Shown: piece by piece, positions 18,842-58,000 of the stretch | Layout of the letters: the number at the start of each line of letters is the position of its first letter | Position numbering within the stretch: position 1 is the stretch's first letter | Assembly: GCF_003918875.1 (NCBI RefSeq) | Contig: NW_025766048.1 | Span: 744,001 to 808,000 of the forward strand | Direction of reading: 5' to 3' | Length of the DNA: 64,000 nt | DNA from: Haliotis rubra | Lineage: Eukaryota | Notes under the pieces: generated by a model | Seen by the model: the letters and a program-made list of their open reading frames with translations, nothing else | Database searches by the model: none | What the model was told of the DNA's origin: nothing | Made by a program: the position numbers and the translations under genes

Positions 18842-19224
18842 CTCATGATATAGCTTAAATACTGTTAGTTAATTGAGCGTAAGTTAGTAAGTGAGTACGG
18901 TTTTACCCCGCTTTTAGCAATGTCCCAGCAGTATCGGGGCGGGGTTACGAGAATGGGCTTCACACATTGTACCCATGTGGAGAGTCAAACCCCAGTCTTC
19001 TGCGTGACGAACGAACGCTTTAGCCACTAGGCAACCCCACCGCCCTGAGCCGCAAGAGACAAGTCGCTTGATACATTATCTCTTTACAATGACGATCAAG
19101 AGACAGATCTGGTTACGAAACACCTTGACAAAGACAACAAACTTCATTTTTAGATGAAATCGCATTTAATACAAAATAAATATGTGTGACGTTACGTATG
19201 ATACTAGTATCAAGATGTTGGTTG

Positions 19225-22200
19225 TTATGGTCTAAAGGGGACGGGCACGCTTGTCATCGAAGTGACTGTTGACTCTAATGAAGCCTTTTCCTGTTAAACA
19301 AAAAAAGTAATACACCATTCCGGTATCCGTTATTGTCAATATCGGCTGTCATCATCATCATCATCATCATCATCATCGTCTAAGAAAAAATAAGTATTCA
19401 AGTGACGAAAGAATCATGGTATGCTGGTGTTATTGTTTGATAAATTAAAGGGCCACTGATCCAGAGCGATTAATGTTTCCAGCCAACAGTCTAATTACGA
19501 AACCTAGCTGCAAACTGGTCAGCCTCTGCTCCCTCGACCGTGACGGACACGGGGACTGGGCTACTGTCCACCTTGGCAGAATTTCTTCAACCTAATTGGT
19601 GGGACATTAGGAAGGGTGGATGCCCATCAGATGCCCTTATTTGAAAATATCCCCGCTACTTTTTGTCTGATTGTAATAAAGTATCCCAGCAGTGTAGGCT
19701 TTATCAGATTTTCAGATGTTTGGATGGTATAGTGACTGATCCAATTTGATCCTATTTCTGTGTTTTTTACCTCGATATTTAATCATGTAAAAATATGATG
19801 TCTATTACCTATGCTATGATATCAAAAACACACATTTGATATATTTGAATCCATAAACTAAACAACCCCACTTTGCCATTGCTAAAAACTCTGACATTTT
19901 ACTTAGGTACATAGGTATATACAGTTTTTAACTAAGTACACAGCAAATGCTTACATATGTTTCTTATGTAACAATGAAGTTCCGTTCGTATCCTCAAATC
20001 AGTGTCGGCCCATAAGATATTTTTCAGGCAATCAAACTTGCATGCAATACAGTGATTACTACACTCTAGCTGTAACCCTTGTTTGGTGGTAAACCTACAC
20101 ATGTTATTTGTCATCATTGACTTGATGGTCAGTTAATGAATTTACAACAGGTATAATTAGTAATAACACCGCTCAGATTACCCGACAAAGGTTCCCATTT
20201 GGCATTTCTTGTGTCTGGAGTAAATACTCAACATGATAAATTGAGGTCTTAGGTGGCAAATGTATGATATCTTATGTAATATGTGCATGGACGTGCAGCA
20301 AGAGGAATTATCAGCTGAGTTACAAAACAAACAGCGATCAAAGGATTAACCGGTAACACGCTGATTGTTTAATTGCTTTTATCCTGCACAGTGGATTTGT
20401 CAAAAGGTAGAGTTTATGTATATAGATTTACTAATCTATACTGAATACATCCTGTCGTAAAGTCTCTTTGTAAAAACAAACGCCCTTCCTTCTAAGGATT
20501 AACCGCCAATACATTCATTGATTGGCTAACTAAATTGCTCCTTTAACTTAATCTCTCCATGAAAGTGTAAGTTTGCAGCACGGAAATAATCACTATACAC
20601 TCACCAATTTACCTCACCTACTTAATCCTTATCCATACTCCTTTTATCAGGCAACATCCATGAGCTTAATGCCGATGGTAATTCACTGTGTTGTTAATAC
20701 ACGTTCAGCCAATAAACAGGAGAGCCGAGATACCGGATGCCGGTTTAGAGAGTGTTAAGTACTGTTCAAACAGTCAAATAGGCGACCTTTGTTGTGCCGA
20801 AATACGGAATACACTGACGCCGGCTTAGAGGGCGTCAATCTCATAAATTAACTAGCTTCTGTCGGGACCAAATTCTAGTGCCGATATTGAGAGCATACCG
20901 GATTGGAGGGCTGCCGAGAGCTTCCACTGTATTCTTGTGAGAGTAATAGCACCTGTTTATGCTTCAGAGTTCACTTTTCAACTTGCTCACATCTAATAGG
21001 CCAAAACAGATAGTTCCGAGTACAGGCTATACTGCGCGATTGGTCTGGTTTGTGTGACGATTCTCAGCTGTGTTTTGGTGAAGCGTTATACTTGTACTAA
21101 CCCATTCTCTTCCCACAGAGGTTACTTGTCATATCTTCCTACGAACCTCTGTTCTAATACGGCCATATTTCCCGGTTCTCGTAAAATCCCCTAGCGGCAA
21201 AAGATCGCAACACGAATTATCTCCCTTCTTTCTATCCAATCAGAACACGTGTTACATCGACTTAGATTAAACTTGACTAACACAAGCAAATGTGGGGCCA
21301 CAAATATCCTCCATCTGCCGGGGACTTGTGTTGATATTACACACAAGACGTTTAATGGCTAGCTTGTCCGTTGTCAACGAGGGCGATGGAGACGCCACTG
21401 ATCCGCCATAACATGACTGTCTAGAAGAAACGTTTGCGCATCGCGCAGGGGAAGAGGTTTAGTTTTCTCGAAGCATACGGAAATTACCGAGGCCTTGCGA
21501 ATGATCACTTTTGAAACAACGTCGCTGATTGCACAACTAAATCTGATTGCCTCCAATCACGAGTCTTGAACGCTCACACCATGAAAGGGCCGTATTAGAA
21601 CAGAGGTTACGTAGGAAGATATGACAGGAGTAACCTCTGTGGGAAGAGAATGGTACTAACCTTGTGTTCCTCGTTATAGAGATACACGGCGGTCGTGCCG
21701 AATCCCCAGTTGAAAACGTCGTAGTTGATGATGTAGTCACAGCCGATGTCTTGTTGGGGAGCAGGGGTGTTCCAGCGACCGTAGATCTGAGGAAGTGAGT
21801 AATGAGGGGCTTAACAACAGTTTCAACGCTATTGCAGTTGGTGCTGATTTAACAACTACCTGGTTGACATGAAGATGACAATATATGAAGTCCAAATTAG
21901 CCTGCTTTAGATTCCTTTCATTGCTGAAGTAAGAACAACCCCCCCCCCCCAATAAAATTAAAAGATTTTTAGAGGGTACATTTAAAATACCCCCAAAAAA
22001 CCCCAAAAACACACAACAAAACAACAACAAAACAACAACAACAACAAAACCAAAACCAACCCCAAACCAAAAACAAACAAAACAATCAAAACAAACCACC
22101 ACCACCCCCAAAAAACAACAACAAAAAAAGCAAAAAACAAACAAGAACCACCCCAAACCCCACACCCCACACCCCCGAACAAATAAACCAACCAAACATA

Positions 22201-25200
22201 AAATAAATCCCCCAAAACAACAACCAAAAAGAAAAATACAAAACAACCGAAAACCCCGCTCTGTATACCAGTGATCATCCATGCCGTAGCTTGACAGCGA
22301 TACTTAATTTGGACATTGATAACATGGATTCCGAGCCAGTCAATCCACATTTAATCCTATTAATATCGATATGCAGGTCTTCAGGTATGACGCTGCCGAT
22401 GATCGCACCACTGACCGTGCATTCAGCCGCCCATAGTTACCCAAATGTAAGAAAACACTCCGGTTAAAATCCTATCAGTGAGTGAGTGAGTTTAGTTTTA
22501 CGACGCTTTTTAGCAATATTCCAGCAATATCACGGCGGGGGACACCAGAAATGGACTTAACACATTGTGCCCATGTGGGGAATCGAACCCGGGTTTTCGG
22601 CGTGACGAGCGAACGCCTTAACCACTAGGCTACCCCACCGCCCCTAAAATCCTATCAATTTCAACATTCACATTGATACTTATTAAACATGGCAAAACCC
22701 AAACATTATTGATCACCTTGAAATGTAATGTTTTCGCAAAGACCAAGAGTCACCATCGTTTTTAAGAAAGAAGTACAGTGTGCTTTGTAATGATTTCGTG
22801 GCCCACGAAGAATCCACGTGGGGGATTCGAGGCAATAGGTCTCTAGTATCCCGCGCGTGTCGTGTGCAGTAATTGATGACCAGGTATTACAGGTAGTTCT
22901 ACTGTGTATCTTGGTGATTATGTGTAACACTGCTGCGGCGCAATACTACATTCATTCATTCTCTGAGTTAGAGTGTTCTTTCTGCTGCTACTTACTCTGA
23001 GTTTAGCACCCGGATGTAGGACATAGTCCCCGAATTTGTAGAGGATGTCGGGTTGGCCTTTTCTCTTTTTTCTCAAACTCCATCCTTGCAACTGCACCGA
23101 CTAGATGCCAAACAGAGTCATGTAGTTAGACAATGGTAGTGATACTTCGTGGTAAGTTCATGTCTGATTAAATGTTAACAAGCAGCCATCCAAACTGGTA
23201 TTGCCCTGAAACTCACCCTGCCCAGCAACGATCCAAATTGGTATTGCCCTGAAACTCACACTGCCTAGCAACGATCCAAACTGGTATTGCCTTGAAACTC
23301 ACCCTGCCCAGCAACGATCCAAACTGGTATTGCCTTGAAACTCAGCCTGCCAAGCAACGATCCAAACTGGTATTGCCTTGAAACTCAGCCTGCCCAGCAA
23401 CGATCCAAACTGGTATTGCCTTGAAACTCACCCTGCCCAGCAACGATCCAAACTGGTATTGCCTTGAAACTCACCCTGCCAAGCAACGATCCAAACTGGT
23501 ATTGCCTTGAAACTCAGCCTGCCCAGCAACGATCCAAACTGGTATTGCCCTGAAACTCACCCTGCCTACCAACGATCCAAACTTGTATTGCCTTGAAACT
23601 CAGCCTGCCCAGCAACGATCCAAACTGGTATTGCCTTGAAACTCAGCCTGCCCAGCAACGATCCAAACTGGTATTGCCTTGAAACTCACCCTGCCAAGCA
23701 ACGATCCAAACTGGTATTGCCTTGAAACTCACCCTGCCAAGCAACGATCCAAACTGGTATTGCCTTGAAACTCACCCTGCCAAGCAACGATCCAAACTGG
23801 TATATCCCTGAAACCCACCCTGCCCAGCAACGATCCAAACTGGTATTGCCTTGAAACTCAGCCTGCCCAGCAACGATCCAAACTGGTATTGCCTTGAAAC
23901 TCACCCTGCCAAGCAACGGTCCAAACTGGTATTGCCTTGAAACTCAGCCTGCCAAGCAACGATCCAAACTGGTATTGCCTTGAAACTCAGCCTGCCAAGC
24001 AACGATCCAAACTGGTATTGCCTTGAAACTCAGCCTGCCCTGCAACGATCCAAACTGGTATTGCCTTGAAACCCACCCTGCCCAGCAACGATCCAAACTG
24101 GTATATCCCTGAAACCCACCCTGCCCAGCAACGATCCAAACTGGTATATCCCTGAAACCCTATCTGCCCAGCAACGATCCAAACTGGTATATCCCTGAAA
24201 CTCACTCTGCCCAGCAACGACCCAAACTGGTATTGTCCTGAAACTCACCCTGCCCAGCAACGGTCCAAACTGGTATTGCCTTGAAACTCACCCTGTCCAG
24301 CAACGATCTAAACTGGTATTGCCTTGAAACTCACCCTGCAAAGCAACGATCCAAACTGGTATTGCCTTGAAACTCACCCTGCCAAGCAACGATCCAAACT
24401 GGTATATTCCTGAAACCCACCCTGCCCAGCAACGATCCAAACTGGTATATCCCTGAAACCCACCCTGGCCAGCAACGGTCCAAACTGGTATTGTCCTGAA
24501 ACTCACCCTGCCCAGCAACGATCCAAACTGGTATATCCCTGAAACTCACCCTGCCCAGCAACGATCCAAACTGGTATATCCCTGAAACTCACCCTGCCAA
24601 GCAACGATCCAAACTGGTATATCCCTGAAACTCACCCTGTCCAGCAACGATCCAAACTGGTATTGTCCTGAAACCCACCCTGCCCAGCAACGATCCAAAC
24701 TGGTATATCCCTGAAACCCACCCTGCCAAGCAACGACCCAAACTGGTATTGTCCTGAAACTCACCCTGCCCAGCAACGGTCCAAACTGGTATTGCCTTGA
24801 AACTCACCCTGCCCAGCAACGGTCCAAACTGGTATTGCCTTGAAACTCACCCTGCCCAGCAACGATCCAAACTGGTATTGCCTTGAAACTCACCCTGCCA
24901 AGCAACGATCCAAACTGGTATATCCCTGAAACCCAACCTGCCCAGGAACAATCCAAACTGGTATATCCCTGAAACCCACCCTGCCCAGCAACGATCCAAA
25001 CTGGTATATCCCTGAAACTCACCCTGTCCAGCAACGACCCAAACTGGTATTGTCCTGAAACTCACCCTGCCCTGCAACGGTCCAAACTGGTATTCCCCTC
25101 CGTGATTTAGCCAATCAACAAGTTGTTTTTAATCATTGTACTTTACTCTCTTTAGTGTTAAACCGGTTGTATAAACATGTCCGAACAATATAAGGGAAGC

Positions 25201-25390
25201 TAAAGCTATACACACAAGAGACAGTAAAATACAGTCCAACCTTTGACTTCGATGCAGTCGTGGTGTTCTCTATTGTTATGTAACTTCCGTCCAATGATAC
25301 TTCAACGAAGCTGACTGGTCCACGGGCTGACCGTGACAGTACCATTCGACCGGAAACGCAAGAGTTTTTTGTCTGCGCATGCGCTAACAT
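19225..25390 (-). CDS. Divergent lamin-tail-domain cassette 3 or stand-alone LTD gene: exons ~25390-25241 (5' boundary uncertain), 23100-22996, 21786-21661, 19290-19225
   Basis: MLAHAQTKNSCVSGRMVLSRSARGPVSFVEVSLDGSYITIENTTTASKSK | SVQLQGWSLRKKRKGQPDILYKFGDYVLHPGAKLR | IYGRWNTPAPQQDIGCDYIINYDVFNWGFGTTAVYLYNEEHK | EKASLESTVTSMTSVPVPFRP*. Internal exons are 105 and 126 nt as in cassette 1, sites are canonical, ATTAAA at ~19170-19165. Confidence 0.8.
21103..21652. mobile_element. MITE with ~65-bp TIRs inserted at the donor site of cassette 3 exon 21786-21661
   Basis: TIR CATTCTCTTCCCACAGAGGTTAC...; direct repeat GTACTAACC at 21094-21102 and 21653-21661. Confidence 0.85.
21935..22256. repeat. C/A-rich low-complexity tract
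   Basis: Degenerate CAA/CAAA/CCCCAAAA runs; source of spurious G/F/V/C-rich ORFs. Confidence 0.9.
22478..22644 (-). mobile_element. tRNA-derived SINE family A (~170 bp), representative copy
   Basis: A box TAGCCTAGTGG, B box GGTTCGATTCC, (ACTC)n tail, TSD TAAAATCCTATCA. Other copies at ~3820-3960, 5022-5180, 6720-6877, 12637-12810, 15233-15410, 18034-18201, 18890-19045, 38308-38437, 47549-47710, 48981-49141, 51103-51247, 54390-54531. Confidence 0.9.
23188..25094. repeat. 43-bp minisatellite, ~44 copies, in the first intron of LTD cassette 3
   Basis: Unit CCAAACTGGTATTGCCTTGAAACTCACCCTGCCCAGCAACGAT, head-to-tail with point variants. Confidence 0.97.
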
Positions 25391-26068
25391 TTCAACACGG
25401 ATATTACATCGGCCAACACAACCTGTCTCTTCAAATCAGTTCGTTTTTGTCTGTAAGGAAAATCAATAACACATTGGTTAGTTGTACACGAACACTGATG
25501 TTATATTAGTTGTATGCGTTCATAAAGTATATCGTTTGTAACATATGTTATATTTGCGAATACGCTTTCTCAATAAAGGCCAAATTTGAGTCGGTTAGAT
25601 CGCTGACTTTGTGTGCTGGCGAATAGATGACTGACTCTGAGAGTATGGGTTGGAATCCCAATTGCTTGGATCGATGGTCATCATTTGTTAAACGTGGAAT
25701 ACATACACGGATACACACAAAACATTTTTCATACTACTAACATCGTACCGGTCTTTGATGTGGCGACCCGTGAAGGTCCGGGTTAGAATTGGTCTTCAGT
25801 CAACCTGTGCTTGTCGAAAGGGGCAACTAACGGGATCGGGTGGTCAGGCCCGCTGACTTGGTTGACACATGTTATCGTATCCCAGTTACGTAGATCGATA
25901 CTCATGGTGCTGATCACTGGATTGTCTGGACTATTTACAGACCGCCGTCATATAGCTGGAATACTGCTGAGTCTGGCGTTAAGCAAAACAACAAACAAGC
26001 AAACAAACTTTGATGTGGCGACGACCGCTTTTGCCTCTCGGTTACATCATATCTGATTGAATACTTAC

Positions 26069-26167
26069 CTCCTACGACGTCTTTGTCATCTTCTGACATC
26101 ATTTACTGCAGGTGTTCTGACGCTGACCCCGAAGGGGTGAGTCCATTCAGGTCTAACGAGGGGACAA
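26069..26167 (-). other. Putative upstream exon of LTD cassette 3 (may encode MMSEDDKDVVG from 26102)
   Basis: Acceptor gctttcatatag and strong donor GAG|GTAAGT. The phase-1 end follows a short ATG-initiated frame. Confidence 0.35.
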
Positions 26168-26244
26168 CTATATGAAAGCAAAAATCAATACAAGATCATA
26201 ACACTGACACAAACGAATGCTACAGTCATTTTTAATTTTATGAC

Positions 26245-29058
26245 CAGAAATTGTGTCTGGTGTCCTGCGTTAAACTGAGACATTGTATCTGGTGCCCTGT
26301 GTTAAACTGAGACATTGTGTCTTGTGCCCTGTGTTAAATTGAGACATTGTATCTGGTGCCCTGTGTTAAACTGAGACATTGTATCTGGTGCCCTGTGTTA
26401 AACTGAGACATTGTGTCTTGTGCCCTGTGTTAAACAGAGACATTGTATCTGGTGCCCTGTGTTAAACTGAGACATTGTGTCTGGTGCCCTGTGTTAAACT
26501 GAGACATTGTATCTAGTTACCCTGCCTTAAACAGAAACATTGCATCTGGTGCCCTGCATTAAACTGAGATATTGTATCTGGTGCCCTGCGTTAACCTGAG
26601 ACATTGTATCTGGTGCCCTGCGTTAAAATGAGATATGGAAACTGGTGCCCTGTGTTAAACAGAGACATTGTATCTGGTAACCTGTGTTAAACTGAGACAT
26701 TGTATCTGGTGCCCTGTGTTAAACAGAAATATTGTATCTGGTGCCCTGTGTTAAACTGAGACATTGTATCTGGTGCCCTGCGTTAAACAGAGACAGTGTA
26801 TCTGGTGCCCTGTGTTATACTGAGACATTGTATCTGGTGCCCTGTGTTAAACAGAGACATTGTATCTGGTAACCTGTGTTAAACTGAGACATTGTATCTG
26901 GTGCCCTGTGTTAAACAGAAATATTGTATCTGGTGCCCTGTGTTATACTGAGACATTGTATCTGGTGCCCTGTGTTAAACTGAGACATTGTATCTGGTAA
27001 CCTGTGTTAAACAGAGACATTGTGTCTTGTGCCCTGTGTTAAACTGAGACATTGTATCTGGTGCCCTGTGTTAAACAGAGACAGTGTATCTGGTGCCCTT
27101 TGTTATACTGAGACATTGTATCTGGTGCCCTGTGTTAAACTGAGACATTGTATCTGGTAACCTGTGTTAAACAGAGACATTGTGTCTGGTGCCCTGTGTT
27201 AAACTGAGACATTGTATCTGGTGCCCTGTGTTAAACTGAGACATTGTATCTGGTAACCTGTGTTAAACAGAGACATTGTGTCTTGTGCCCTGTGTTAAAC
27301 TGAGACATTATATCTGGTGCCCTGTGTTAAACAGAGACAGTGTATCTGGTGCCCTGTGTTATACTGAGACATTGTATCTGGTGCCCTGTGTTAAACAGAG
27401 ACATTGTATCTGGTAACCTGTGTTAAACTGAGACATTGTATCTGGTGCCCTGTGTTAAACAGAAATATTGTATCTGGTGCCCTGTGTTATACTGAGACAT
27501 TGTATCTGGTGCCCTGTGTTAAACTGAGACATTGTATCTGGTAACCTGTGTTAAACAGAGACATTGTGTCTTGTGCCCTGTGTTAAACTGAGACATTGTA
27601 TCTGGTGCCCTGTGTTAAACAGAGACAGTGTATCTGGTGCCCTTTGTTAAACTGAGACATTGTATCTGGTGCCCTGTGTTAAACTGAGACATTGTATCTG
27701 GTAACCTGTGTTAAACAGAGACATTGTGTCTGGTGCCCTGTGTTAAACTGAGACATTGTATCTGGTGCCCTGTGTTAAACTGAGACATTGTATCTGGTAA
27801 CCTGTGTTAAACAGAGACATTGTGTCTTGTGCCCTGTGTTAAACTGAGACATTATATCTGGTGCCCTGTGTTAAACAGAGACAGTGTATCTGGTGCCCTG
27901 TGTTATACTGAGACATTGTATCTGGTGCCCTGTGTTAAACTGAGACATGGTATCTGGTAACCTGTGTTAAACAGAGACATTGTGTCTGGTGCCCTGTGTT
28001 AAACTGAGACATTGTATCTGGTGCCCTGTGTTATACTGAGACAGTGTATCTGGTGCCCTGTGTTAAACTGAGGCATTGTATCTGGTGCCCTGTGTTAAAC
28101 TGAGACATTGTATCTGGTAACCTGTGTTAAACAGAGACATTGTGTCTTGTTCCCTGTGTTAAATTGAGACATTGTATCTGGTGCCATGTGTTAAACAGAC
28201 ATATTGTATCTGGTGCCCTGTGTTAAACAGAGACATTGTATCTGGCGCCCTGTGTTAAACTGAGACATTGTATCTGGTGCCCTGTGTTAAACAGAGACAT
28301 TGTATCTGGTGCCCTGTGTTAAACTGAGACATTGTATCTGGTGCCCTGTGTTAAATTGAGACATTGTATCTGGTGCCCTGTGTTAAACAGAGACATTGTA
28401 TCTGGTGCCCTGTGTTAAACAGAGACATTGTATCTGGTGCCCTGTGTTAAACAGAGACATTGTATCTGGTGCCCTGTGTTAAACAGAGACATTGTATCTA
28501 GTGCCCTGTGTTAAACAGAGACATTGTATCTGGTGCCCTGCGTTAAACTGAGACATTGTATCTGGTGCCCTGTGTTAAACTGAGACATTGTATCTGGTGC
28601 CCTGTGTTAAACTGAGACATTGTATCTGGTGCCCTGTGTTAAACAGAGACATTGTATCTGGTGCCCTGTGTTAAACAGAGACATTGTATCTGGTGCCCTG
28701 TGTTAAACTGAGACATTGTATCTGGTGCCCTGTGTTAAACAGAGACATTGTATCTGGTGCCCTGTGTTAAACAGAGACATTGTATCTGGTGCCCTGTGTT
28801 AAACAGAGACATTGTATCTGATGCCCTGTGTTAAACAGAGACATTGTATCTGGTGCCCTGTGTTAAACTGAGACATTGTATCTGGTGCCCTGTGTTAAAC
28901 AGAGACATTGTGTCTTGTGCCCTGTGTTAAACAGAGACATTGTATCTGGTGCCCTGTGTTAAACTGAGACATTGTATCTGGTGCCCTGTGTTAAACAGAG
29001 ACATTGTATCTGGTGCCCTGTGTTAAACAGAGACATTGTATCTGGTGCCCTGTGTTAA
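26245..29058. repeat. 32-bp minisatellite, ~88 copies, with a 544-bp (17-monomer) higher-order repeat
   Basis: Unit TGTGTTAAACTGAGACATTGTATCTGGTGCCC. The variant AGACAGTG recurs at 26791, 27079, 27335, 27623 and 27879. Confidence 0.97.
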
Positions 29059-30845
29059 TCTGAAACACAGAGTGCCATGTACGAAGCTGATACAGTGTTA
29101 TAAATGCCCTGTGTTAAACTGAGAGGTTCTATATGGTGCCTTGTGTGAAGCCTATAACATATCCTAATTATATAATGTGTGGAGCTCATTGTTGATACCG
29201 ACAATCGTATCCTAGCTGCGCTGATCGATGATGACATCATCATGCCATTCGCTGCAGTTTCTGGTCCAGGGTCTATCACTTACAGATCACTGTTACATAG
29301 CTGGGATATTGCTGAGTGCAGCTTTAAACAACAAACAACAAACTGACCTCGCACGACATATTTAGACCTAGGCAAAGACGCTTAAGAAACTAGAGCGTGT
29401 GCCCTGCTTCCTCCATAAATCGTCTCTGTGTCAAGATAGACATAAATACAGTTCCTGAGTAATCGTGGTCATCCAAGTTTCCATGTCCTGACTTTAACTT
29501 CACTACTGAATTCTTGAAAACATATTCTAACCGATCGTCGTCAGGTTTGTGCGAGCATAGTGCATTCAAGGTTAAATTGAAAAGGGGGTGATTTAAACTC
29601 ACCTTGTCACTGCGCAGGCCTTGTGATTGTGTATAAGTTCTGATATGGCGTAAATCGTCAGCCTTAAGAGATCCCACAAAGGAATGTTCAAAGCAAACAA
29701 ACCTACATGCTTCTACCGAGGTATATGTTCACCTGAACTACATTTCAACTGATTAAACGCACCACACAGGTAACACACACTGGATCACATGCACCGAAAT
29801 ACAAAGAGACATTGTGTAGTCATGAAAAGAAATAGCATTCAAATTATAATGCACTCAATACTAATAGCAAGCATCCTATGATATAAATGAGGACATTTAT
29901 CAATTCATTGCATTAAACGACCATGCTACACTCCGTTGGAGATAGAATTGCCTCGGCGAATGACAACGCCCACAGCAGAGAATGAAGGTGAAAAGTACGG
30001 GGGTAAACCTGCTCTCTCGAACGCGAATGCTATATTTGTGCTCTATTATGCAGCATGTGTAATCACCATGACCTTCTGTCATAGGATGTGTCATACAATT
30101 GTGCATGCCAGTGGTCCTGGTTGTCATTCTAGCCCGCAATGGGCTCGGCATTTCCTGTATAGCATCTAAGGAAAAGTGCACGGGCCTAAGACACCCCCCT
30201 GTCTAACCACGTATCTATCAGTGCCTCCTTTAGTGCATATACTGACTTCAACTCGTTTCAAGTTTCGTCAAAATGTCATGCATAAATAATCGTGTGATAC
30301 CTGTTAAGTGTATGGGTAGACTGGTTCCGTCACAGTCAGTAATATCCCCACTAGAGCAAGGAATCCAGTAGATTGTCGAAACTGAGCCGAGCATTCAAGT
30401 GGGTGGAGGCCCAAGCATAAATTCAAGTTGTCGGAAAATGATGTCACGCTATCAACAAGGTCACACATTGTTATCTTATCTCTTACGCCGGACACGCATG
30501 GGGTACCAGGAAAGGGGCTTTTCTGGTTAACGCCTCACTCTGCAGAATTCCTGCTATATGGGCGGCATGTAAATATTAGAGACCAGACAATCAAGTGATC
30601 AACACAATGAGCATCGATCTACGTAACTGGGATACGATGACACGTCTTAACCAAGTCCGCGAGCCTGACCACCCGATCCCGTTAGTCGCCTAGTACGACA
30701 AGCATGGGTTGCTGAAAACCAATTCTAACCCGGATCTTCACGGGTAAGGGAAGGAATTAAACACGAGGATGCAGCGTCTTGTAAAACCTATAAAACTGGA
30801 ATAAAGTATATGTGCATTATTTGACCTTATGCCATTTTTAATGCA

Positions 30846-35457: not shown

Positions 35458-35857
35458 AGCAGGGCCTGTTTGCATCTTACTGTACGTCGTTTAACAAAAG
35501 ACGTATTCGTAAATCATTTTTGGAATTCTTTATTTCAAAAAGGTCATAATGTATTATATGAGACCCTAAAATATAGAGCACCATGTGGCTACGTACAGTT
35601 TAGAAAACATAGAATTATAACAATATGAAAATATCTACTAGTTTCAGAAAGCGAAGCAGGTAGTGCGTCATGACAACATGTCAAACACTTATTGTTTGTC
35701 ATGACTCAAAACGAGACCAAACACGCGTGCATTGACATAACAATACTTTTTGTGCCTATATTATCGCTATATGAATATTTTTTACTGTTCCAGTATTAGA
35801 CGGATTGATCGTTGTGTGTTGCCTCAACAATAGGGCCGATTAATGACGTGTAACGAA

Positions 35858-35873
35858 GTGACGTCACTTCCGG
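35858..35873 (-). promoter_or_regulatory. Overlapping ETS-CRE motif CCGGAAGTGACGTCAC; second copy at 51794-51809
   Basis: Exact 16-mer retained downstream of both cassette 1 and cassette 2. Confidence 0.3.
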
Positions 35874-36019
35874 TCAACAGATCAACCCCGTCCGTATTGA
35901 CATTGAAAACCATAAAAGGCACCTTGGCAATTAACAAATGGAATTCATAACCTCAACAAAATATTTAACAATTATTGTGATTTAAGCTAGCATGTTGCGC
36001 GTTCAGTGCAGTTGGTCGT

Positions 36020-38895
36020 TTACTTCAGTCCGGCGATTGTTGATTTCAGAGAAGCCTTCTCCTGTTGATGAAAAGAAAGCAACACCGTTATATGCTGTGA
36101 TGATATGTCACAGTTACCAGAAACATTGTTCCTATCTGGAAGAGTTAACTCCCCTAGTGCCCTGTAAATAGGTCCTGTTAACGTTGTGTTTCTACAGTAG
36201 TATGATTTGTTCAAATATTGATAATATCAATAACCAAATTTTGCTGATAGCCAATACCAATTTAAATGACTCTAAACACCCGCATTTTCACGATTTCACA
36301 ATCATCAATTGGAAACCACGAGCAGATCCTGGCACACCAATGGGACGTAACTGTCTACACATGTTTCGAAAAACGCCAAGGTCCTAAAGACTTTCTCCAA
36401 AAGCAGACATCCATCGATTTATCCCCATTACAACCATAACATATCACGCCATCATACTAACGTTGTTGCTGTCGTCAAGGAGAATGGTGGTGCCGGAGCC
36501 GCCTCCCCAGGAGAAACATTCTTTGTTGATGATGTAGTCGCAGGGGATTTTGTCGCCGGGGCCTGGGGGGTTGCCAGCAGCATCGATCTAAGGGAGATAA
36601 TCAATATATGAAAGCACAAGGTGGAGAAAGGCATCGTGCGGAATGACGTTGACTGGCGACTAGCAAAAAGGTCCTGTTAACGTTTCAGGTTGAAAATACT
36701 AATGTATTTATACAATAGTATGATTAATTCAAACATGATGATATCAATAACCAAATTTGGTTCATAACCAATACCAATTTAAATGACTCTAAACACCCGC
36801 ATTTTCATGGTTTCGACAAGAGCCGTCATAGGAGGTTACTATTCCGGTATGATAATGTGCTTACAACCCAAGGTTCACAATCATCAATTGAAAACCACGA
36901 GCAGATCCTGGCACACCAATGGGACGTAACTGTCTGTACATGTTTCACCTGCCGATACCGAAACGCCAAGGTCCTAAAGACTTTCCCGGTCGCAGACATC
37001 CATCGATTTATCCCCATTACAACCATAACATATCACGCCATCATACTAACGTTGTTGCTGTCGTCGTCAAGGAGAATGGTGGTGCCGGAGCCGCCTCCCC
37101 AGGAGAAGCATTCTTTGTTGATGAAGTAGTCGCAAGGGACTTTGTCGCTGGGGCCTGGGGGGTTACCAGCAGCATAGATCTAAGGGAGATAATAAATATA
37201 TGAAAGCAGAAAGGGAGAAAGCCGCCTCCCCAGGAGAAACATTCTTTGTTGATGATGTAGTCGCAGGGGATTTTGTCGCCGGGGCCTGGGGGGTTGCCAG
37301 CAGCATCGATCTAAGGGAGATAATCAATATATGAAAGCACAAGGTGGAGAAAGGCATCGTGCGGAATGACGTTGACTGGCGACTAGCAAAAAGGTCCTGT
37401 TAACGTTTCAGGTTGAAAATACTAATGTATTTATACAATAGTATGATTAATTCAAACATGATGATATCAATAACCAAATTTGGTTCATAACCAATACCAA
37501 TTTAAATGACTCTAAACACCCGCATTTTCATGGTTTCGACAAGAGCCGTCATAGGAGGTTACTATTCCGGTATGATAATGTGCTTACAACCCAAGGTTCA
37601 CAATCATCAATTGAAAACCACGAGCAGATCCTGGCACACCAATGGGACGTAACTGTCTGTACATGTTTCACCTGCCGATACCGAAACGCCAAGGTCCTAA
37701 AGACTTTCCCGGTCGCAGACATCCATCGATTTATCCCCATTACAACCATAACATATCACGCCATCATACTAACGTTGTTGCTGTCGTCGTCAAGGAGAAT
37801 GGTGGTGCCGGAGCCGCCTCCCCAGGAGAAGCATTCTTTGTTGATGAAGTAGTCGCAAGGGACTTTGTCGCTGGGGCCTGGGGGGTTGCCAGCAGCATAG
37901 ATCTAAGGGAGATAATAAATATATGAAAGCAGAAAGGGGAGAAATGTCTTCATAAATATCATCATCATAAATAGCCATAAATTATGAACGGTCCCTTATC
38001 CACCATCAAACATGTGTTTTTTCTTTCGACTGGGGTTTGTTGTATAGGGCAGTTAGGTCTGAGGGCTAAGTACTAACAGCATCTCCGGACTACCATGACA
38101 AACTAGTTGTTCTGAATATCCTGGTTCAAATCCAAATGACTCACCCTCAGCTTTTGGCCGGGATTGAGAACGGTGTTGCCGAAGGTGTAGACGGCGTCAG
38201 CCTTGCCGGGAATGCTTCTTTTGAGCGTCCATCCGGACAGATCCTGATTCTGAAAGTCAGATAGAGGGACACTTTTACCACAAGTCTCATGGTTACATGA
38301 CAGCATGAGCGGTGTTTAAAGCGTTCGAACGAAAACCTGGGTTCTTTTGCCCACATGGGTACAATGTGTGAAGCTATTTCTGGTGTCCCCCGCCGTGGAA
38401 TATTGCTAAAAGCGGCGTAAAACTAAACTCACTCACACTTACATGATAACATGAAGAGCATATGGCAACTGGTTCAAACAGCTTTAATTCAGGCTGTCGT
38501 TGTTTAAATCGACCTCAGCACGAAGGCATTCATAACTATCATACCTTAAAGCCTTACGACAGTCGTGGCGCTAAGTTTGCGGCACCCAGATGATATCAGC
38601 TAGCATATATGTAATTGATTGCTCATTTGTCAATATGATAAATTCTAGAGAAAATGTCATCATTTTTAAGAAAATATGTAATTTCGTATTCGCTCATGTT
38701 TCTGCATTTAATTTTAATGTTTGTAATTTAAAAAAAAATAAATCATTCTCTTATTGCGACCTACTTTTCTCTTAGTTCCAGAGGTGTTGTTCTCAATCAA
38801 GATGTAACTTCCGTCAATAGATGCCTCGACGAGGCTGATTGGTCCACAAGACGACCTTGAGTGGGTCATTGTATCAGAAGCCTCGCTGTTCATGC
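36020..38895 (-). CDS. IF lamin-tail-domain cassette 2 (duplicate of cassette 1): exons 38895-38765, 38249-38145, third exon in three full copies (37902-37774, 37179-37051, 36587-36462) plus a truncated copy (37310-37220), last exon 36061-36020
   Basis: Near-identical exon sizes, phases and splice sites to cassette 1, and open frames (SMNSEASDTMTHSRSSCGPISLVEASIDGSYILIENN..., NQDLSGWTLKRSIPGKADAVYTFGNTVLNPGQKLR, EKASLKSTIAGLK*). May be a decaying duplicate. Confidence 0.65.
36497..37944. repeat. Near-identical 723-bp tandem duplication containing LTD third-exon copies
   Basis: Identical ORF-track entries offset by 723 (36826/37549, 36857/37580). Junction at ~37220. Confidence 0.95.
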
Positions 38896-39462
38896 CTGCA
38901 GAACGGTTCGTTCCAGCTATTATAATTTTCAGTCAAAAAAGGTGTGAGATTAAAATGAAATGAGTGAGGTGAAAATAAACAAAGGAATTAGATATACAGA
39001 TAATGTTAAATCCTTTAAATATTGACAGATGGGTTAAGTGCAAAGACGACGACATTGGTAGGAATTAATATTCAGTGGGTATGTGCAATATGCTTCAACG
39101 AGTCGAACATTTACTAGGCAAAATGGTTATATAAGACCACAAAGGGTTACATCGTGAGAGAACAATAGAGCGAGGTGTCGGCGGGATATATGATAATTGA
39201 TTTGCAAGCAGAGCAAGCTGGACTAGGCCAAACCGCATAAAGGCAACTTGGGACAGCTGCAATGTCTCAGTTTAACACAGGACACCAGATTCAATGTCTC
39301 AGTTCAACACAAAAAAACCCCAAATACACGTATTACCTTGTAACTCACTCTGCCTGGCAACGATGCAAAGGGGTATCGCCACGTAACAGTTATCGACAGC
39401 ACCTGGCTGTAGCGCTTGCGCAGACAGCTTGACTTATACTTCCGTAATAGAGACATCACTAA

Positions 39463-51935: not shown

Positions 51936-52855
51936 CAAAAGACAACCCATTCTATCGACACGATGTCGAATTTCCGACCGTCCAATGTTCCCATAATCCC
52001 TTACGAAAGTATCCCGTTAACCAATGAGAGGGTCGCGTTTGGTTACATCAACGTTTTGTACAAAGAAAGACTTATTGGTAAGGCGTGCAGTTCAACATTT
52101 CCGTCGTACGAATTATGCTTGTCAAATTGATGGAAAATTCAGCTGCCGATAAAAGATCCGAAACTCACATTGTCCACGGGCACCTGTGACAGAAGCGGGT
52201 ATTTCGCTGGTTCACTTTAACCCTGTTCTGCCGATATCGTAACCACTTTACCAGCGACCTTCACCTTTAAAAATCAGGGTCATAATAACCTTGACCTTTA
52301 AACCCTGTGTCAATAAGATTCACAACCTCCAGAATGCTCTCAGCACAAAGGACATACATGGGACACCCACTCACATCAACATTATTTACAAAACAGTAAT
52401 CACAAACAAATACTAGATCTCCACTGCCGTTGGGTAATGCATGTACTAGTATGGAATTTATATATAGTTTTGTTAAGTGTATTTCACTCTGCAGGGCAAG
52501 ACTTTGATTTCAGCATAGAAGCATGATTGATTACAGTCTGACCATTCCGGTTTTCATACCTGACCACGAGCATTAAGAACATCAGAACCGACGAATGTTT
52601 TCATTCCAGTTTCTCCCACCGTTTTCAGAATCAGACATAATACTCGTTGAGCAACTGAACCAAAAATGGCTAATAAAAAATATATATTTCTGGACAACTT
52701 TCTAAGAGTGAACTAAACACTAAAGACTAAACACTGTTGTAAGACTGGCCTTTGGCAAGGAGCCCTATAAAGCCAATTAAAAGTGGAACTGAAATGTTAT
52801 GTATATTGACAGAGCAGATGTTCTAGTACTGTCTAGAACTGGTCGGCGTTCTTTG
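51936..52855. mobile_element. ~920-bp segment just downstream of the cassette 1 stop codon, absent from cassette 2
   Basis: Cassette 2 reads GCATG|TTGCGCG contiguously (~35990). Cassette 1 has CAAA...TTTG-bounded sequence at this junction. Confidence 0.55.
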
Positions 52856-52880
52856 TTGCGCGCTCAGTGTAGTTGGTCGT

Positions 52881-55013
52881 TTACTTCAGTCCGGAGATTG
52901 TTGATTTCAGAGAAGCCTTCTCCTGTTGATGAAAAGAAAGCAAAACCGTTATATGCTGTGATGATATGTCACAGTTCCCAGAAACATTGTTCCTATCTGG
53001 AAGAGTTAACTCCCCTAGTGCCCTGTAAATAGGTCCTGTTAACGTTGTGTTTCTACAGTAGTATGATTTGTTCAAATATTGAAGACATCAGCATGATAAT
53101 ATCAATAACCAAATTTTGCTGATAGCCAATACCAATTTAAATGACTCTAAACACCCGAATTTTCACGATTTCACAATCATCAATTGGAAACCACGAGCAG
53201 ATCCTGGCACACCAATGGGACGTAACTGTCTACACATGTTTCGAACAACGTCGCCTGCCTAAGGCGACGCCAACACGCCAAGGTCCTAAAGACTTTCCCC
53301 GATCGCAGACACCCATCGATTTATCCCCATTACAACCATAACATATCACGCCATCATACTAACGTTGTTGCCTTCGTCAAGGAGAATGGTGGTGCCGGAG
53401 CCGCCTCCCCAGGAGAAACATTCTTTGTTGATGATGTAGTCGCAGGGGATTTTGTCGCCGGGGCCTGGGGGGTTGCCAGCAGCATAGATCTAAGGGAGAT
53501 AATAAATAGATTAAAGCACAAGGTAGAGAAAGGGACCGTACGGAATGACGTTGACTGGCGACTAGCCAAAAGTGCAAACCTTCAATTTTGAGGGTCGTAT
53601 TTTGTTCAGAAACATTTTGGTTGTTTGTTTCACATTAAATATCTTATTCGTGGGCGCAAAGCCACAAACGTGAGAAAGCAATTATTTCAGAAAAAAGCAT
53701 TTCGAGTCATTTAGCATGTGCCACTTGCATAAGATAAGGAAACTATTTCTGAAAGAAGAGGTGGTCCGATATTGGGACAGCATGGACCACGACTTTCTAA
53801 CTTCTTAGATCAGTAGTATGCCCCGCCGCATTGAAGCCTGCATTGCTGCCCATGGTGACTTGACAAAAATACTAACTGTTCACCTGTCTTTGAATCTGGA
53901 GTTATGTTCTGCTAATATTCACATTTAATACGAGTGAAAAAATTAAAAAAATACAATCTTTAAATTCTCAAACATTTCTGGTTGTATATCTATGGAACTC
54001 CACCACTTAACAACAATTTCTCGTTTCTATCGTTTAAAGCCACCATCAAACATGGTAGCCTGTCTCACAGTCCCTGTACCATATTATTTTCCTTACTGCC
54101 AGGCCCTCCCTGCAATACTAAAGCCGTAAATAAAGCAAGTCTAGATTCCCTCACTAGTCTAGTCTAGATCTCACTGGGGCTCCTACCATGATCCGCTAGT
54201 TCTGAATATCCTGGTTCAAATCCAAATGACTCACCCTCAGCTTGTTGCCCTGCTTCAGAACGGTGTTGCCGAAGGTGAAGACGGCGTCAGCCTTGCCGGG
54301 AATGCTCCTTTTGAGCGTCCATCCGGACAGATCCTGATTCTGAAAGTCAAACAGAGGGACACCTTTACCTAAGGTTTCATGGTTACATGAGCGGTGGGGG
54401 TAGCCTAGTGGTTAAAATGTTCGCTCGTCTTGCCGGTTCGATTCCCCACATGGGTACAATGTGTGAAGCCATTTCTGGTGTCCCCCGCCGTGGAATATTG
54501 CTAAAAGCGGCCTAAAACTAAACTCACTCACACTTACATGACAACATGAAGAGCATATGGCAACTGGTTCAAACAGTTTTAATTCATACTGTGGTTGTTT
54601 AAAGCGACCTCAGCACGAAGGTGTTCATAGCTCTCATACCTTAACAAAGACTTACGGCAGTCGTAACACTAAGGTTGATGGTATACGCTAGCATACTAGT
54701 ATATGTATTTGAGTGCTCATTTGATCATATTCTGGGAAAACTGTTATCATTTTCACGAAAATATGTAATTTCGTATCAGCTCATGCTTCTGTATTTATTT
54801 TCAATGCGTTTCCAAGGTGACAAGTACAGGGGCACGTAAACATGACGTTTGTTAGTTTAAAAACATTTTCCCATTTTCTTACCTTTCCCTTTGATCCAGA
54901 GGTGGTGTTCTCAATCATGATGTAACTTCCGTCAATAGATGCCTCGACGAAGGCGATTGGTCCACGGGACGACCTTGACTGGGTCATTCTACCGGAAGCC
55001 TCGCTGTTCATGC
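52881..55013 (-). CDS. IF lamin-tail-domain cassette 1: exons 55013-54883, 54339-54235, 53489-53364, 52922-52881
   Basis: SMNSEASGRMTQSRSSRGPIAFVEASIDGSYIMIENTTSGSKGK | NQDLSGWTLKRSIPGKADAVFTFGNTVLKQGNKLR | IYAAGNPPGPGDKIPCDYIINKECFSWGGGSGTTILLDEGNN | EKASLKSTISGLK*. LTD motifs (IEN, LSGW.L, F.F, WG.G). The phase-1 acceptor matches the 58591 donor. No CaaX. Confidence 0.88.
53700..53880 (+). mobile_element. Tc1-family transposase C-terminal remnant in cassette 1 intron
   Basis: WDSMDHDFL...SSMPRRIEACIAAHGDLTKY*. Confidence 0.7.
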
Positions 55014-58000
55014 CTGCAGAACGGTTTGTTCCAGCTATTATAGTTATCAATCAAAAAGGTGTGAGATGAATATGAAAAGGGTGAGGTGAAAAGAAATAAA
55101 GGAATTAAATATACAGATAATGTTAAATCCTTTAGATATTGACAGATGGGTTAAGTGCAAACACGACTACATTGACAGAAATGTTAAGTGGTTAACATTC
55201 AATTGGTATGTGCAATATGCTTCAACGAGTAGAACATTTGCTATACAAATTGGTTATATAAGAACACAAAGGGTTACATTGTGAGAGAACAATGGGGGGA
55301 GGTGTCGGCGGGATATATGATTATTGATTTTCAAGCAGAGCAAACTAGACTAGGCCAGGCCACATAACGGCAACCTGGGACAGCTAGTCACGTGACCTGA
55401 CTGTCTCATTTACGTCACCTGTCCGGTAAAGCTTGTGTGGGCATGATCGGCACGAGTGTGGCCTCATTCACACCATTTAAAGCAGATAAGAGTAAACATG
55501 CAGAATTTCTCAATGACTGATGATGGGTGGGGGCAAATATTGAAACAATCAGGGATAGGCGACCGTTAGAAAAGCAAAGGGAGAGAACTTGTGGTAAGCT
55601 GGTTTCGGATTATTAAGGGTTATCATTTTTATAATACATCTGGATGTTAATCCTCAATTTTGGGTACCAAATTACCTTAACACACAGAGGAGCCTATAGA
55701 TTTACCTCATTGTAATATTTACTGGTCGTATACAGTAGAATATCAAGAGATTAAACGTAAAGGGTCAACTGTTTTAAAACGATATTTTCAGTTGAGTGAG
55801 CATGAAAGGATTGTGCAGTTGTTCCCATGGGCAGAAGTGTCTACGCTTCGGTGAACATGATTTACATACGATGTGCTATGACTCATAAATACAGCCCTTT
55901 CAGAAGATGCAAATCATTTAATACTTGTTAACAGAGGACCTATTCAACATGCAAGTTAGATCCAACCTCATTCTAAAAGACTTGCTGTTGTGGAAAAAGT
56001 TATGCATTAAAGTGCGCAAAGGCATTTGTGATCACATAAATGGCAACCGGTAGCAAGCAACTCTCTTTTGAAAACTATAATAAAACGGTGGGGACATAAC
56101 AATGATATCTAATTTCCCTATATACCACGCGGCAATATAAAATAGAATTCCACGCAGCTAACTCTCCAATTCACGAGCCGTAGTTTCGTAGTTCAATTTG
56201 TTCACAGCCCCCAGTCACACAAAGTCACCACAATTTTTTATTTAGCATGAAGGGCAAATACATGTAGATCCTGCTGTGAATAGCACATTGTTGAAATAGT
56301 TTCAAACAATCGGGACCGCCCCTGTTTGCTATGACAGTGACAGAGCGAACTTGTTTGTACAAGACGCCTCGCGCAGAGGGTTGAAAGGTCACCAACTCAA
56401 AGTTGCAAATCAGGTATTACTGCAAGCCTCGCTTTGGAAGGAAAGCCTCTGTTTGAACTTTAGTTCATGGATTGAGGTTTCGCCTGATTGGCTGAGCTAG
56501 ATGACTCACTGCCTCAGGTCTGCGTTCCGTCAGTGTTACAGTCCCACATAATCATTCAATTTCACTGCGTTAATGTTTTGTATGTTAGTCTGTATGGTGT
56601 CCTGAGTGTTTTGTAAGGCTTACATTTCTAGTTTAAAATCCTACTGTAAATTCCCCTTTGAACAAACCTACGTTTCTGACATTATTGCCTAGTAAATTAC
56701 ATAGTTTCACATTTTTTTTATAACTTCTATAACATATTTAAAAGTTTCGAACATATAAATGTCAGACATACACTTCCATGTTTTCCAGAAAGTAAATTAC
56801 GTACTTCATATGATTAAAAATTATTTCTACGAATATTAATTTCAACTAGCAGACCTACGTGAAATAGCATAAGGCACACGAATTGCTCTGAAAAGTATTT
56901 GAATGGACTCCTTAAGCTAGCAATTTATGAAGTAGTATTCATCGACAAGAACCTGAAAAGTATTGCTATAGGAAAGTCACAGCCACATCAAGCGAGTGAG
57001 AAACAAATCAATATATTTTTTCACGCAACTACAAAACGGGGTGATCAATCACAACAGATGCAACAGAAAAAGGGTTCAAAGACACGGCCGAAAACAAAAC
57101 TTTCACAACTGCATTTACCATTGCACTCATGACCTAAAAAATTATTGACTTTGTTTCAATTTGGGAACGGTGCATTTTTACGACTTACGTAATTCAACAT
57201 TACATACACGAATTGTTAGAAATATACATACTTTCAGATTTTGTCGCTGAAATAGAAACTAGATTCATATTCATGAACATTTTAGTCGTTACGGCAGGAT
57301 TGTGAATAATTAATATTTGTATAATATCTTTCTATGCACAAATATACTATTGGCTGTGAATATATACCATTGTAGTGATATGGGTTTATATACCTTCACC
57401 ATATATATGCATATATCTTGTTTGTGGTTATATATTATGTATATGTGTCTTAAAGGAAGATCAAGATGAATTAACATTCAACATTTTATTCGTGTGTAAT
57501 GAAAAAAACGTGACAATTCACTATATCATGATCGAAAATAGTGCTAAAATACAAAGAGTAGAATATAGGATATATTTACTTTATCACATTGATGTACACA
57601 ACCTACTTAGATCGTACGTATAGCACCGGCCTTAGAAACAAAAAGGAAATTGCATGAAACATTCATCTTCTTTGCTTTGTTACATGTGGACACGTGATTG
57701 GTCGAGTTGCATGCTGCTTGAAATTCTTTTGTGACATGGCTTGTGATTGGTCAAAATCATGCGGAGAATGGATAAGAACATGCTTGTCGTGGTAAAACAA
57801 AGGAACAGTGCGTAGTATTGCCATATGTTTGGATTCGTATATACAGGCTCAGTTTAAACTTATACGGGCTCGTAACAAACGGAACGAAATAATTTTCCAA
57901 TTTCGTCTGAGTTTTTTGTCACGAACATGGTGAAAATGCAGCCACGGCTGCGGAAGAGCGAATCACATTTATAACATGATCTCCGTGGCGATCGCCAACA

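Follow-up and report, generated by a model that had tools for sequence, protein, structure and literature searches.

The locus described here, on the minus strand of a 64,000-nt stretch of Haliotis rubra DNA (the window), raises the question of whether a duplicated tail of a cytoplasmic intermediate-filament (IF) gene has become a gene of its own that encodes a free lamin-tail domain (LTD). The exons at issue, termed cassette 3, are four open exons (A to D) that together encode 148 aa, with AG/GT at every exon boundary. A first-pass annotation had proposed these exons and their splice sites, a start codon at 25390 and a further donor at 29603; all are present, at most 1-3 nt from where they had been placed, and the open exons and the internal exon lengths of 105 and 126 nt were confirmed from the sequence. 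In the order of transcription, the features are:

29603-29700, minus strand: candidate further 5' exon, predicted from sequence, ending ACAAG/GTGAGT at 29603
26167-26069, minus strand: exon U, a non-coding 5' leader exon of 99 nt, with acceptor CATATAG/, donor GGAG/GTAAGT and four upstream ATGs
26068-25451, minus strand: intron U-A, 618 nt, with repeats of very high copy number at about 25524-25640 and 25758-25991
25450-25241, minus strand: exon A, 210 nt, with acceptor TTACAG/ and donor AAG/GTTGGA; it holds a 60-nt leader, the ATG at 25390-25388 and then codons 1-50 of the LTD protein
25438-25436, minus strand: in-frame TGA in the exon A leader, which also holds a one-codon ATG-TAA ORF
23181-25094, no strand assigned: 43-bp satellite, 44.5 copies (Tandem Repeats Finder), most of intron A-B
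23100-22996, minus strand: exon B, 105 nt, 35 codons, phase 0
about 22477-22640, no strand assigned: SINE-like repeat, 164 nt
21786-21661, minus strand: exon C, 126 nt, 42 codons, phase 0
21102-21653, no strand assigned: young MITE-like insertion, 553 nt, beginning 7 nt past the exon C donor
19290 to about 19140, minus strand: exon D, with the final 21 codons, stop TAA at 19227-19225 and the 3' UTR
19170-19165, minus strand: ATTAAA signal in exon D, from which the 3' end is placed near 19140

The introns had been said to hold a satellite, a MITE and a SINE. The satellite was found, and exon A is bordered by satellites on either side. The MITE-like element has inverted arms of 25 and 21 nt, both perfect, and at least 1800 candidate genomic copies that are 97-98% alike. 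The third repeat is SINE-like, with at least 1900 candidate genomic copies that are 98-99% alike, although ARAGORN did not detect a tRNA-like head.

Upstream on the same strand is a filament gene with its rod and tail exons, the rod exons 34 kb away. This gene is annotated as 'retrograde protein of 51 kDa-like' (XP_046567556/7), and cassette 1 forms the C-terminal end of both its NCBI isoforms (601 and 608 aa). From the isoform sequences, the donor of the filament tail exon reads AGC A/GTAAGA (phase 1) and cassette 1 has two tandem acceptors. Cassettes 1 and 3 have in common the four-exon layout, the 105/126-nt internal exons and the phases, and the upstream acceptor of cassette 1 aligns with the acceptor of cassette 3. 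A gapless alignment of the two gave 68 identical codons out of 132 (52%), in keeping with the earlier count of 68 shared residues in 134, and a nucleotide identity of 62.4%. By blastn, only exons A, C and D, plus a handful of bases at splice sites, showed similarity; no intron similarity was detected between the two cassettes, and their introns, in which no obvious resemblance had been noted before, could not be aligned. Cassettes 1, 2 and 3 clustered as one clade with support of 100/97, in a tree without cilin sequences that bears on local origin only. These comparisons show that cassette 3 arose long ago, by partial tandem duplication, from four tail exons of the filament gene. Unlike cassette 1, which stands in frame behind the rod, cassette 3 is separated by stops from every upstream frame, and it has its own ATG, a leader exon, a C-terminus extended by 8 residues and a 2.6-fold longer branch.

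Spliced contigs indicate that cassette 3 is transcribed apart from the filament tail. Contigs of runs X1, X3 and X6, from two studies, span 26068-26169 and continue at 25449/25450 after a gap of 618 nt that is bounded by GT..AG on the minus strand. Contigs from three runs lie exactly on 25241-25449 and leave exon A at its donor, and the contig sequence past this donor amounts to 366-383 nt, where exons B, C and D are predicted to total about 382 nt. The mapping of contigs took in exons U and A, and we infer the splicing of exons B to D from these lengths and the RefSeq model. The label of the runs as RNA is a guess, and it is the canonical spliced joints that mark them as RNA; exon A proved to be single-copy in the genome, which makes a processed DNA copy unlikely. 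Furthermore, the spliced model is identical to the 148-aa RefSeq predictions XP_046567552/3/4 of Haliotis rubra, which NCBI assigns, in three transcript variants, to a gene other than the 601/608-aa filament gene. A transcript of its own for a free LTD of roughly 148 aa, raised earlier as a possibility, is therefore supported by the spliced U-A contigs, by this gene model and by the closed reading frames described below.

The contigs extend 21 letters upstream of exon U, and the exon that precedes it must end in AG. This fits the donor at 29603 and excludes the filament tail exon, which ends in CA. A promoter belonging to cassette 3 itself would be expected between 26 and 36 kb on the minus strand. 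Alternatively, transcripts that begin at the filament promoter and bypass cassettes 1 and 2 could carry the chain from U to D as their 3' part. The filament ORF would then close shortly after entering exon U or A, giving a tail-less product, and the LTD ORF would follow as a downstream cistron that is not translated. The tandem order on one strand and the continued use of the ancestral acceptor are consistent with such read-through, and although the tail exon is excluded as the direct partner of U, a rod exon ending in AG could directly precede it. However, the NCBI gene name of the 148-aa models differs from that of the filament gene, and read-through mRNAs would hold a stop followed by three or four introns. 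mRNAs with a stop followed by several introns are expected targets of nonsense-mediated decay. We consider this origin of the transcripts improbable.

All three frames hold stops between the acceptor at 25450 and the ATG at 25390; the observed transcripts therefore cannot encode the LTD as an in-frame extension of the rod. Joining the phase 1 tail-exon donor to 25450 yields six codons and then a stop, and the partner observed at 25450 is exon U. A fusion of the rod to the cassette 3 LTD in some tissue could still arise through a minor acceptor, TTAG/ at 25384 (exon from 25383), whose phase fits the tail-exon donor: by hand reading, A + CG makes a Thr codon and the frame runs into the LTD. Contigs drop rare variants, and three small runs were examined; in these, however, the spliced contigs all use 25450 and none uses 25383. 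The pyrimidine tract ahead of 25384 is poor, the two filament isoforms seen in the gene's protein cluster each terminate in cassette 1, and no long protein carrying cassette 3 sequence was found by the protein searches, the sole long match above 41% identity being the cassette 1 isoform at 52%. Such an alternative tail is, in our view, very improbable.

In the transcripts with exon U, the ATG at 25390, with G at -3 and T at +4, is preceded by five upstream ATGs that open uORFs of 15, 17, 16, 5 and 1 codons. Because of these upstream ATGs, translation of the 148-aa ORF, predicted from the sequence, is in doubt.

The predicted product is an IF-derived domain rather than an IF protein. Its sequence matched the Pfam LTD (PF00932) with 37.3 bits against a gathering cut-off of 34.3, over residues 20-131 and positions 2-104 of the 109-position profile; single exons, being too short, scored 13-16 bits or gave no match, exon B being weak alone. 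No coiled-coil rod (PF00038) was found in the 148-aa ORF, which matched the LTD alone, although its RefSeq name is that of an intermediate filament protein. A sequence match to lamin B1 structures was obtained with E 1.6e-5. Structure prediction, suggested earlier as a check on the Ig-like character of the domain, gave a lamin-tail Ig-fold: the AlphaFold2 model has nine strands, a pLDDT of 88.8 and a pTM of 0.81, and its top 15 Foldseek matches in the PDB are all Ig-folds of lamin A/C, B1 or B2 (probability 1.00, TM up to 0.84). In a 43-sequence alignment, all eight invariant or nearly invariant LTD columns are kept (G24, G35, N42, W57, W112, G113, G115 and A130), while in a second alignment cassette 3 retains 9 of the 11 columns conserved at 90% or more, compared with 11 of 11 in cassette 1. 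Exon A matched database protein P0001 at 100%. A word search of the protein library returned only the protein itself at full length and no match for the open frame around exon C, in a library that seemingly lacks other Haliotis proteomes, and no annotated orthologue of the 148-aa protein was found in the protein libraries; neither a peptide nor a transcription start was found.

The ORF might instead belong to a transcribed relic. Under this reading, cassette 3 would be a former alternative filament tail that still yields spliced RNA, either non-coding or noise, with an ORF that is translated negligibly or not at all. The upstream ATGs in the leader point in this direction, as do a remnant of cassette 1's second acceptor that lies one nucleotide out of frame in cassette 3, the want of an annotated orthologue in the protein libraries, a decay of GC3 from 0.68 to 0.57, and faster amino-acid evolution. 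The amino-acid branch of cassette 3 is about 2.6 times that of cassette 1, relative-rate counts agreeing, so that at the same dS the branch omega would be near 0.65-0.7; pairwise omega is 0.50 (0.28-0.82). In contrast, cassette 3 has accumulated no stop and no indel in 132 codons despite 38% nucleotide divergence. The local neutral ratio of indels to substitutions (0.09) predicts about 10 indels in 393 nt, and it is this argument that carries weight, the probability of no stop being about 0.05 at K = 0.35, which is weak alone.

The relic reading is also at odds with the retention of all eight near-invariant LTD residues, whereas cassette 2, far younger than cassette 3, has already lost some of the conserved positions, the R of the RGP motif among them. 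Likewise, the predicted fold is confident, and exon A varies by about 1% in the same contigs in which exon U varies by 6-7%. In a relative, the genomic ORF keeps the ATG and exon A is 88% identical, whereas the adjacent intron has diverged. Among family-conserved columns, 6 of 30 (or 3 of 22) changed where 29-36% would be expected, a modest depletion that a Fisher test overstates, as columns in which cassette 1 equals the consensus exclude cassette 1 changes by construction. The purifying selection that had been claimed is thus upheld by the stop-free gapless frame, the conserved residues and the omega of 0.50, but it is relaxed, as the 2.6-fold branch indicates. The sequence comparisons support selection that appears real but relaxed, and dN/dS alone is compatible with near-neutrality on the cassette 3 branch. 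Some of this selection may date from a time when cassette 3 served as an alternative filament tail. Overall, we regard the relic as possible though on the doubtful side.

Our preferred reading, to which we assign a probability of about 0.55, is that cassette 3 is a separate transcription unit that encodes a free 148-aa LTD. A partial tandem duplication copied the four tail exons of the cytoplasmic IF gene, and the copy would have become its own transcription unit, made of one or more further 5' exons followed by U, A, B, C and D, in which the ancestral upstream acceptor of the cassette was reused. With every frame behind this acceptor closed by stops, the ATG at 25390 opens the sole long ORF, and its predicted rod-less product of 148 aa is essentially one lamin-tail Ig-like domain. 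The most likely function would be to act in trans, as a soluble tail, upon the network of the parent filament, where it could vie with the filament's own tail for contacts or partners, much as an isolated lamin tail does in vitro. More tentatively, cassette 3 might be a natural, genetically encoded trans-acting tail, a duplicate that acquired a new leader exon and, at the old acceptor, a start codon, and that now supplies a soluble Ig-like domain to modulate how the parent filament assembles or binds partners; we hold this specific proposal to be rather doubtful.

Rod-less LTD proteins are already known as a kind, and the abalone protein is already predicted by NCBI. Since RefSeq holds the model, the gain here is one of interpretation, not of discovery. 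If the protein is made, the locus offers a clean, datable case of domain liberation, from the tail of a structural protein to a free-standing gene, and a natural reagent for the poorly understood Ig-like tail of invertebrate cytoplasmic filaments; if it is not made, cassette 3 is an ordinary transcribed relic.

One-LTD predictions of about 150 aa, like that of abalone, occur in Liolophura sinensis (XP_064616944.1, 157 aa) and Mactra antiquata (KAL4219588.1, 154 aa). They are 34-36% identical to the abalone protein, fall outside the Haliotis cassette clade and may be partial models. To our knowledge, neither of these LTD-only models has been studied.

The vertebrate LMNTD1 and LMNTD2 ('truncated cilins', bioRxiv 10.1101/2025.08.21.671432) are likewise IF-derived proteins that kept the LTD and lost the rod. 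They originated in the cilin/nematocilin lineage, where a whole-gene paralogue lost its rod; the abalone gene, by comparison, is much shorter and goes back to a recent, lineage-specific partial duplication of a canonical cytoplasmic IF tail. Orthology to LMNTD1/2 was considered and not retained, the domain grouping instead with the neighbouring cassettes 1 and 2 (100/97, again in the tree without cilins). Furthermore, the free recombinant tail of lamin B3 (LB3T) blocks lamin polymerisation in vitro (PMC2196852; Ig-fold work, PMC2315674). LB3T is an experimental fragment of a nuclear lamin, neither a natural gene nor part of a cytoplasmic filament, but it acts as an isolated LTD-containing tail in trans on its parent filament system, as we propose for the abalone protein.

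The window, free of any N, carries on its minus strand a cytoplasmic intermediate-filament gene of the blacklip abalone (Haliotis rubra), followed by three lamin-tail (LTD) cassettes:

Rod exons of the filament gene, about 61958 to 59076, minus strand; last rod exon with a Pfam Filament match (E 4.9e-10)
Tail exon of the filament gene, 58707-58591, minus strand; end AGC A/GTAAGA (phase 1)
Cassette 1, four-exon lamin-tail, 55.0-52.9 kb, minus strand, downstream of the tail exon
Cassette 2, four-exon lamin-tail, 38.9-36.0 kb, minus strand, downstream of cassette 1
Cassette 3, four-exon lamin-tail, 25.4-19.2 kb, minus strand, downstream of cassette 2

NCBI lists two isoforms of the filament gene under the name 'retrograde protein of 51 kDa-like': X1 has 608 aa, X2 has 601 aa, and cassette 1 forms the end of each. 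The 7-residue difference comes from the use of two tandem acceptors (TAATAG/ and CTGCAG/), separated by 21 nt, at the first exon of cassette 1 (55010-55040). Across the 1.38-Gb genome, the only significant relatives of cassette-3 exons A and C were these three cassettes.

The first-pass annotation had described cassette 3 as four open exons with internal exons of 105 and 126 nt and conserved splice sites, all of which were present:

Exon U, 26167-26069, minus strand, non-coding leader exon
Exon A, 25450-25241, minus strand, AG/GT borders
Exon B, 105 nt, 23100-22996, minus strand, AG/GT borders
Exon C, 126 nt, 21786-21661, minus strand, AG/GT borders
Exon D, from 19290, minus strand, AG border at its start, stop codon TAA at 19227-19225

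The proposed ATG (25390), acceptor (25450), upstream exon (26167-26069) and donor (29603) were likewise found in the sequence. Cassettes 3 and 1 aligned without gaps over 132 codons, 68 of them identical, in agreement with an earlier count of about 68 matches; nucleotide identity was 62.4%. Blastn similarity was confined to exons A, C and D plus a small number of bases at splice sites, with none in the introns; the satellite, MITE and SINE said to lie in these were all found. In exon C (21661-21786), unlike the other exons, pS was lower than pN (0.35 and 0.39, against cassette 1) and GC3 reached 0.74; codon bias, splicing constraint or an old conversion tract are possible causes.

Repeats in the introns of cassette 3:

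43-bp satellite, first intron
MITE-like element, young, 553 nt, 21102-21653, terminal inverted repeats of about 65 nt
SINE-like repeat, young, 164 nt, 22477-22640, related piece near 18920-19030

A first look at the genome gave at least 1800 candidates for the MITE-like element, whose copies are 97-98% identical; it begins 7 nt past the exon C donor, which is undisturbed. The SINE-like repeat has at least 1900 candidates, with copies 98-99% identical, and ARAGORN found no tRNA-like head in it. The duplication boundary immediately upstream of cassette 2 also contains monomers of the satellite (39330-39387). Between exons U and A, 25524-25640 and 25758-25991 are very abundant repeats: word depth is extreme in each of the four runs and reaches millions in the DNA run. 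Immediately upstream of exon U is a 32-bp minisatellite (88 copies, 2.8 kb, 26246-29067), which presumably belongs to intron 1 of the cassette-3 transcript.

Transcription of cassette 3 was examined with sequencing-run contigs aligned to the satellite-free stretch 25095-26245, which takes in exons A and U. In two runs of study P1 (X1, X3) and one of study P2 (X6), contigs aligned over two sharply bounded blocks, exactly 25241-25449 and 26068-26169, joined across a 618-nt skip with GT..AG ends on the minus strand; the DNA control, run X5, was colinear with the genome. The upstream exon postulated from sequence is therefore spliced to acceptor 25450. A processed DNA copy as the source of these joints is unlikely because no second copy of exon A was found in the genome. 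No contig continued into the intron below 25241, though this intron lies within the aligned stretch; beyond the exon A donor the contigs extend 366-383 nt elsewhere, and predicted exons B, C and D together span about 382 nt, with the poly(A) site placed some 25 nt past ATTAAA (19170-19165). The contigs extend 21 letters beyond the 5' end of exon U, so that there is at least one more 5' exon. Since the alignment runs on to 26169, which lies two bases outside exon U, the preceding exon ends in AG, which fits donor 29603. A rod exon ending in CAG could possibly precede exon U directly. The filament tail exon was ruled out in this position, as it ends in CA rather than the required AG.

The reading frame also separates cassette 3 from the filament. 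Past acceptor 25450, each of the three frames runs into a stop ahead of the open LTD frame; a TGA at 25438-25436 closes the LTD's own frame. Joined to 25450, the phase 1 tail exon would read six codons and then a stop; joined to exon U, it meets a stop within that exon. The LTD of cassette 3 thus cannot be a filament tail in the observed transcripts, and the U-A joint together with the closed frames favors the proposed separate transcript for a free LTD over an alternative tail. Acceptor 25450 aligns with the upstream acceptor of cassette 1, and the ancestral site is therefore still used; about 57 extra nucleotides lie between it and the LTD codons. In cassette 3, what remains of the second cassette-1 acceptor is shifted out of frame by one nucleotide. 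A poor acceptor (TTAG/) at 25384 would be in phase by hand reading, and no contig of X1, X3 or X6 used it.

A search with the open frame around exon A retrieved P0001, a 148-aa H. rubra protein (XP_046567552.1, XP_046567553.1 and XP_046567554.1, 'non-neuronal cytoplasmic intermediate filament protein-like') identical to the spliced cassette-3 model from the window. RefSeq thus already predicts the stand-alone gene by automated annotation, giving it three transcript variants that all encode one protein; no paper on it was found in the literature searched. Sequence searches were run with single exons and with P0001. P0001 scored 37.3 bits against Pfam LTD (cut-off 34.3) and matched lamin B1 tail structures in sequence. 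Its predicted structure is a nine-strand beta domain (pLDDT 88.8, pTM 0.81), and each of the 15 top structural matches is a lamin Ig-fold. Because the rod is absent, the RefSeq name is misleading: P0001 represents a domain of IF origin rather than an IF protein.

The claim of purifying selection was supported, but the selection is relaxed. Pairwise comparison of cassettes 3 and 1 gave dN 0.44, dS 0.88 (bootstrap 0.58-1.44) and omega 0.50 (0.28-0.82). The three cassettes grouped as one clade (support 100/97) in a 35-sequence LTD tree, where the cassette-3 branch was 2.6 times as long as that of cassette 1 (0.73 vs 0.28); relative-rate counts agreed (typically 15 vs 9, up to 19 vs 4 with the closest outgroups). 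After the branch split, omega on the cassette-3 branch would be roughly 0.65-0.7, so near-neutrality is compatible with dN/dS alone. With a neutral indel:substitution ratio of 0.09, taken from non-coding parts of cassettes 1 and 2, a neutral cassette-3 branch would have accumulated about 10 indels in 393 nt (P(none) about 1e-4), and none was observed. None of the 8 invariant or nearly invariant LTD residues has been lost. Cassette 3 also keeps 24 of the 30 positions at which cassette 1 equals the family consensus (43% identity elsewhere), a modest depletion against the 29-36% change expected, since this choice of columns excludes cassette-1 changes. On a relative's Logan contig, a 65-aa ORF (P0002) retains the ATG and shows 88% identity across exon A, past which it reads into much more diverged intron. 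The spliced run contigs differ from the reference by 6-7% in exon U, where they form two haplotypes, and at 2 of 209 positions in exon A.

Cassette 2 (35900-39400) is a much younger copy of cassette 1, with dS about 0.07 and omega about 0.96 against it, and bears all cassette 1/2 differences in the tree. It has lost conserved residues (e.g. RGP to CGP) and holds three full and one truncated copies of its third exon (37902-37774, 37319-37221, 37179-37051 and 36587-36462). Both filament-gene isoforms that were seen lack it, and it looks like a decaying pseudo-cassette. Cassettes 1 and 2 differ very unevenly along their length (52580-55380 vs 35720-39262): by 16% in intron A-B, by 11% upstream and by 2% in intron C-D, with 3' flanks that are unalignable. 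This pattern suggests gene conversion or stepwise duplication. The decay of cassette 2, the absence of indels, the kept residues, P0002 and the variation in exon A versus exon U are stronger arguments for selection than dN/dS.

The selection detected may nevertheless date from a past life of cassette 3 as an alternative tail. Against a working gene argue the five upstream ATGs (uORFs of 15, 17, 16, 5 and 1 codons) in the leader, which consists of exon U and the first 60 nt of exon A, and a fall in GC3 from 0.68 to 0.57, towards the intronic 0.35-0.43. In X5 and X6, a T>A change (plus strand) at 25409 removes the one-codon ATG-TAA from that allele.

As regards the stand-alone gene, a partial duplication has reused the ancestral acceptor behind a new leader exon and a closed upstream frame, and yields spliced RNA with an intact LTD. 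Transcription would start from its own promoter and translation at ATG 25390, and the soluble tail domain might act in trans on the parent filament. A precedent for such a putative role comes from the lamin B3 tail: as a free fragment it binds lamin B3 and prevents lamin B3 from polymerising (PMC2196852). The observation of an old, intact cassette is confirmed, and its interpretation as a stand-alone LTD is supported as far as testable. The cassette-3 gene, already predicted by NCBI, adds another putative rod-less LTD protein to a known class, like vertebrate LMNTD1 and LMNTD2 (bioRxiv 10.1101/2025.08.21.671432) and the short LTD-only gene models in a chiton and a clam.
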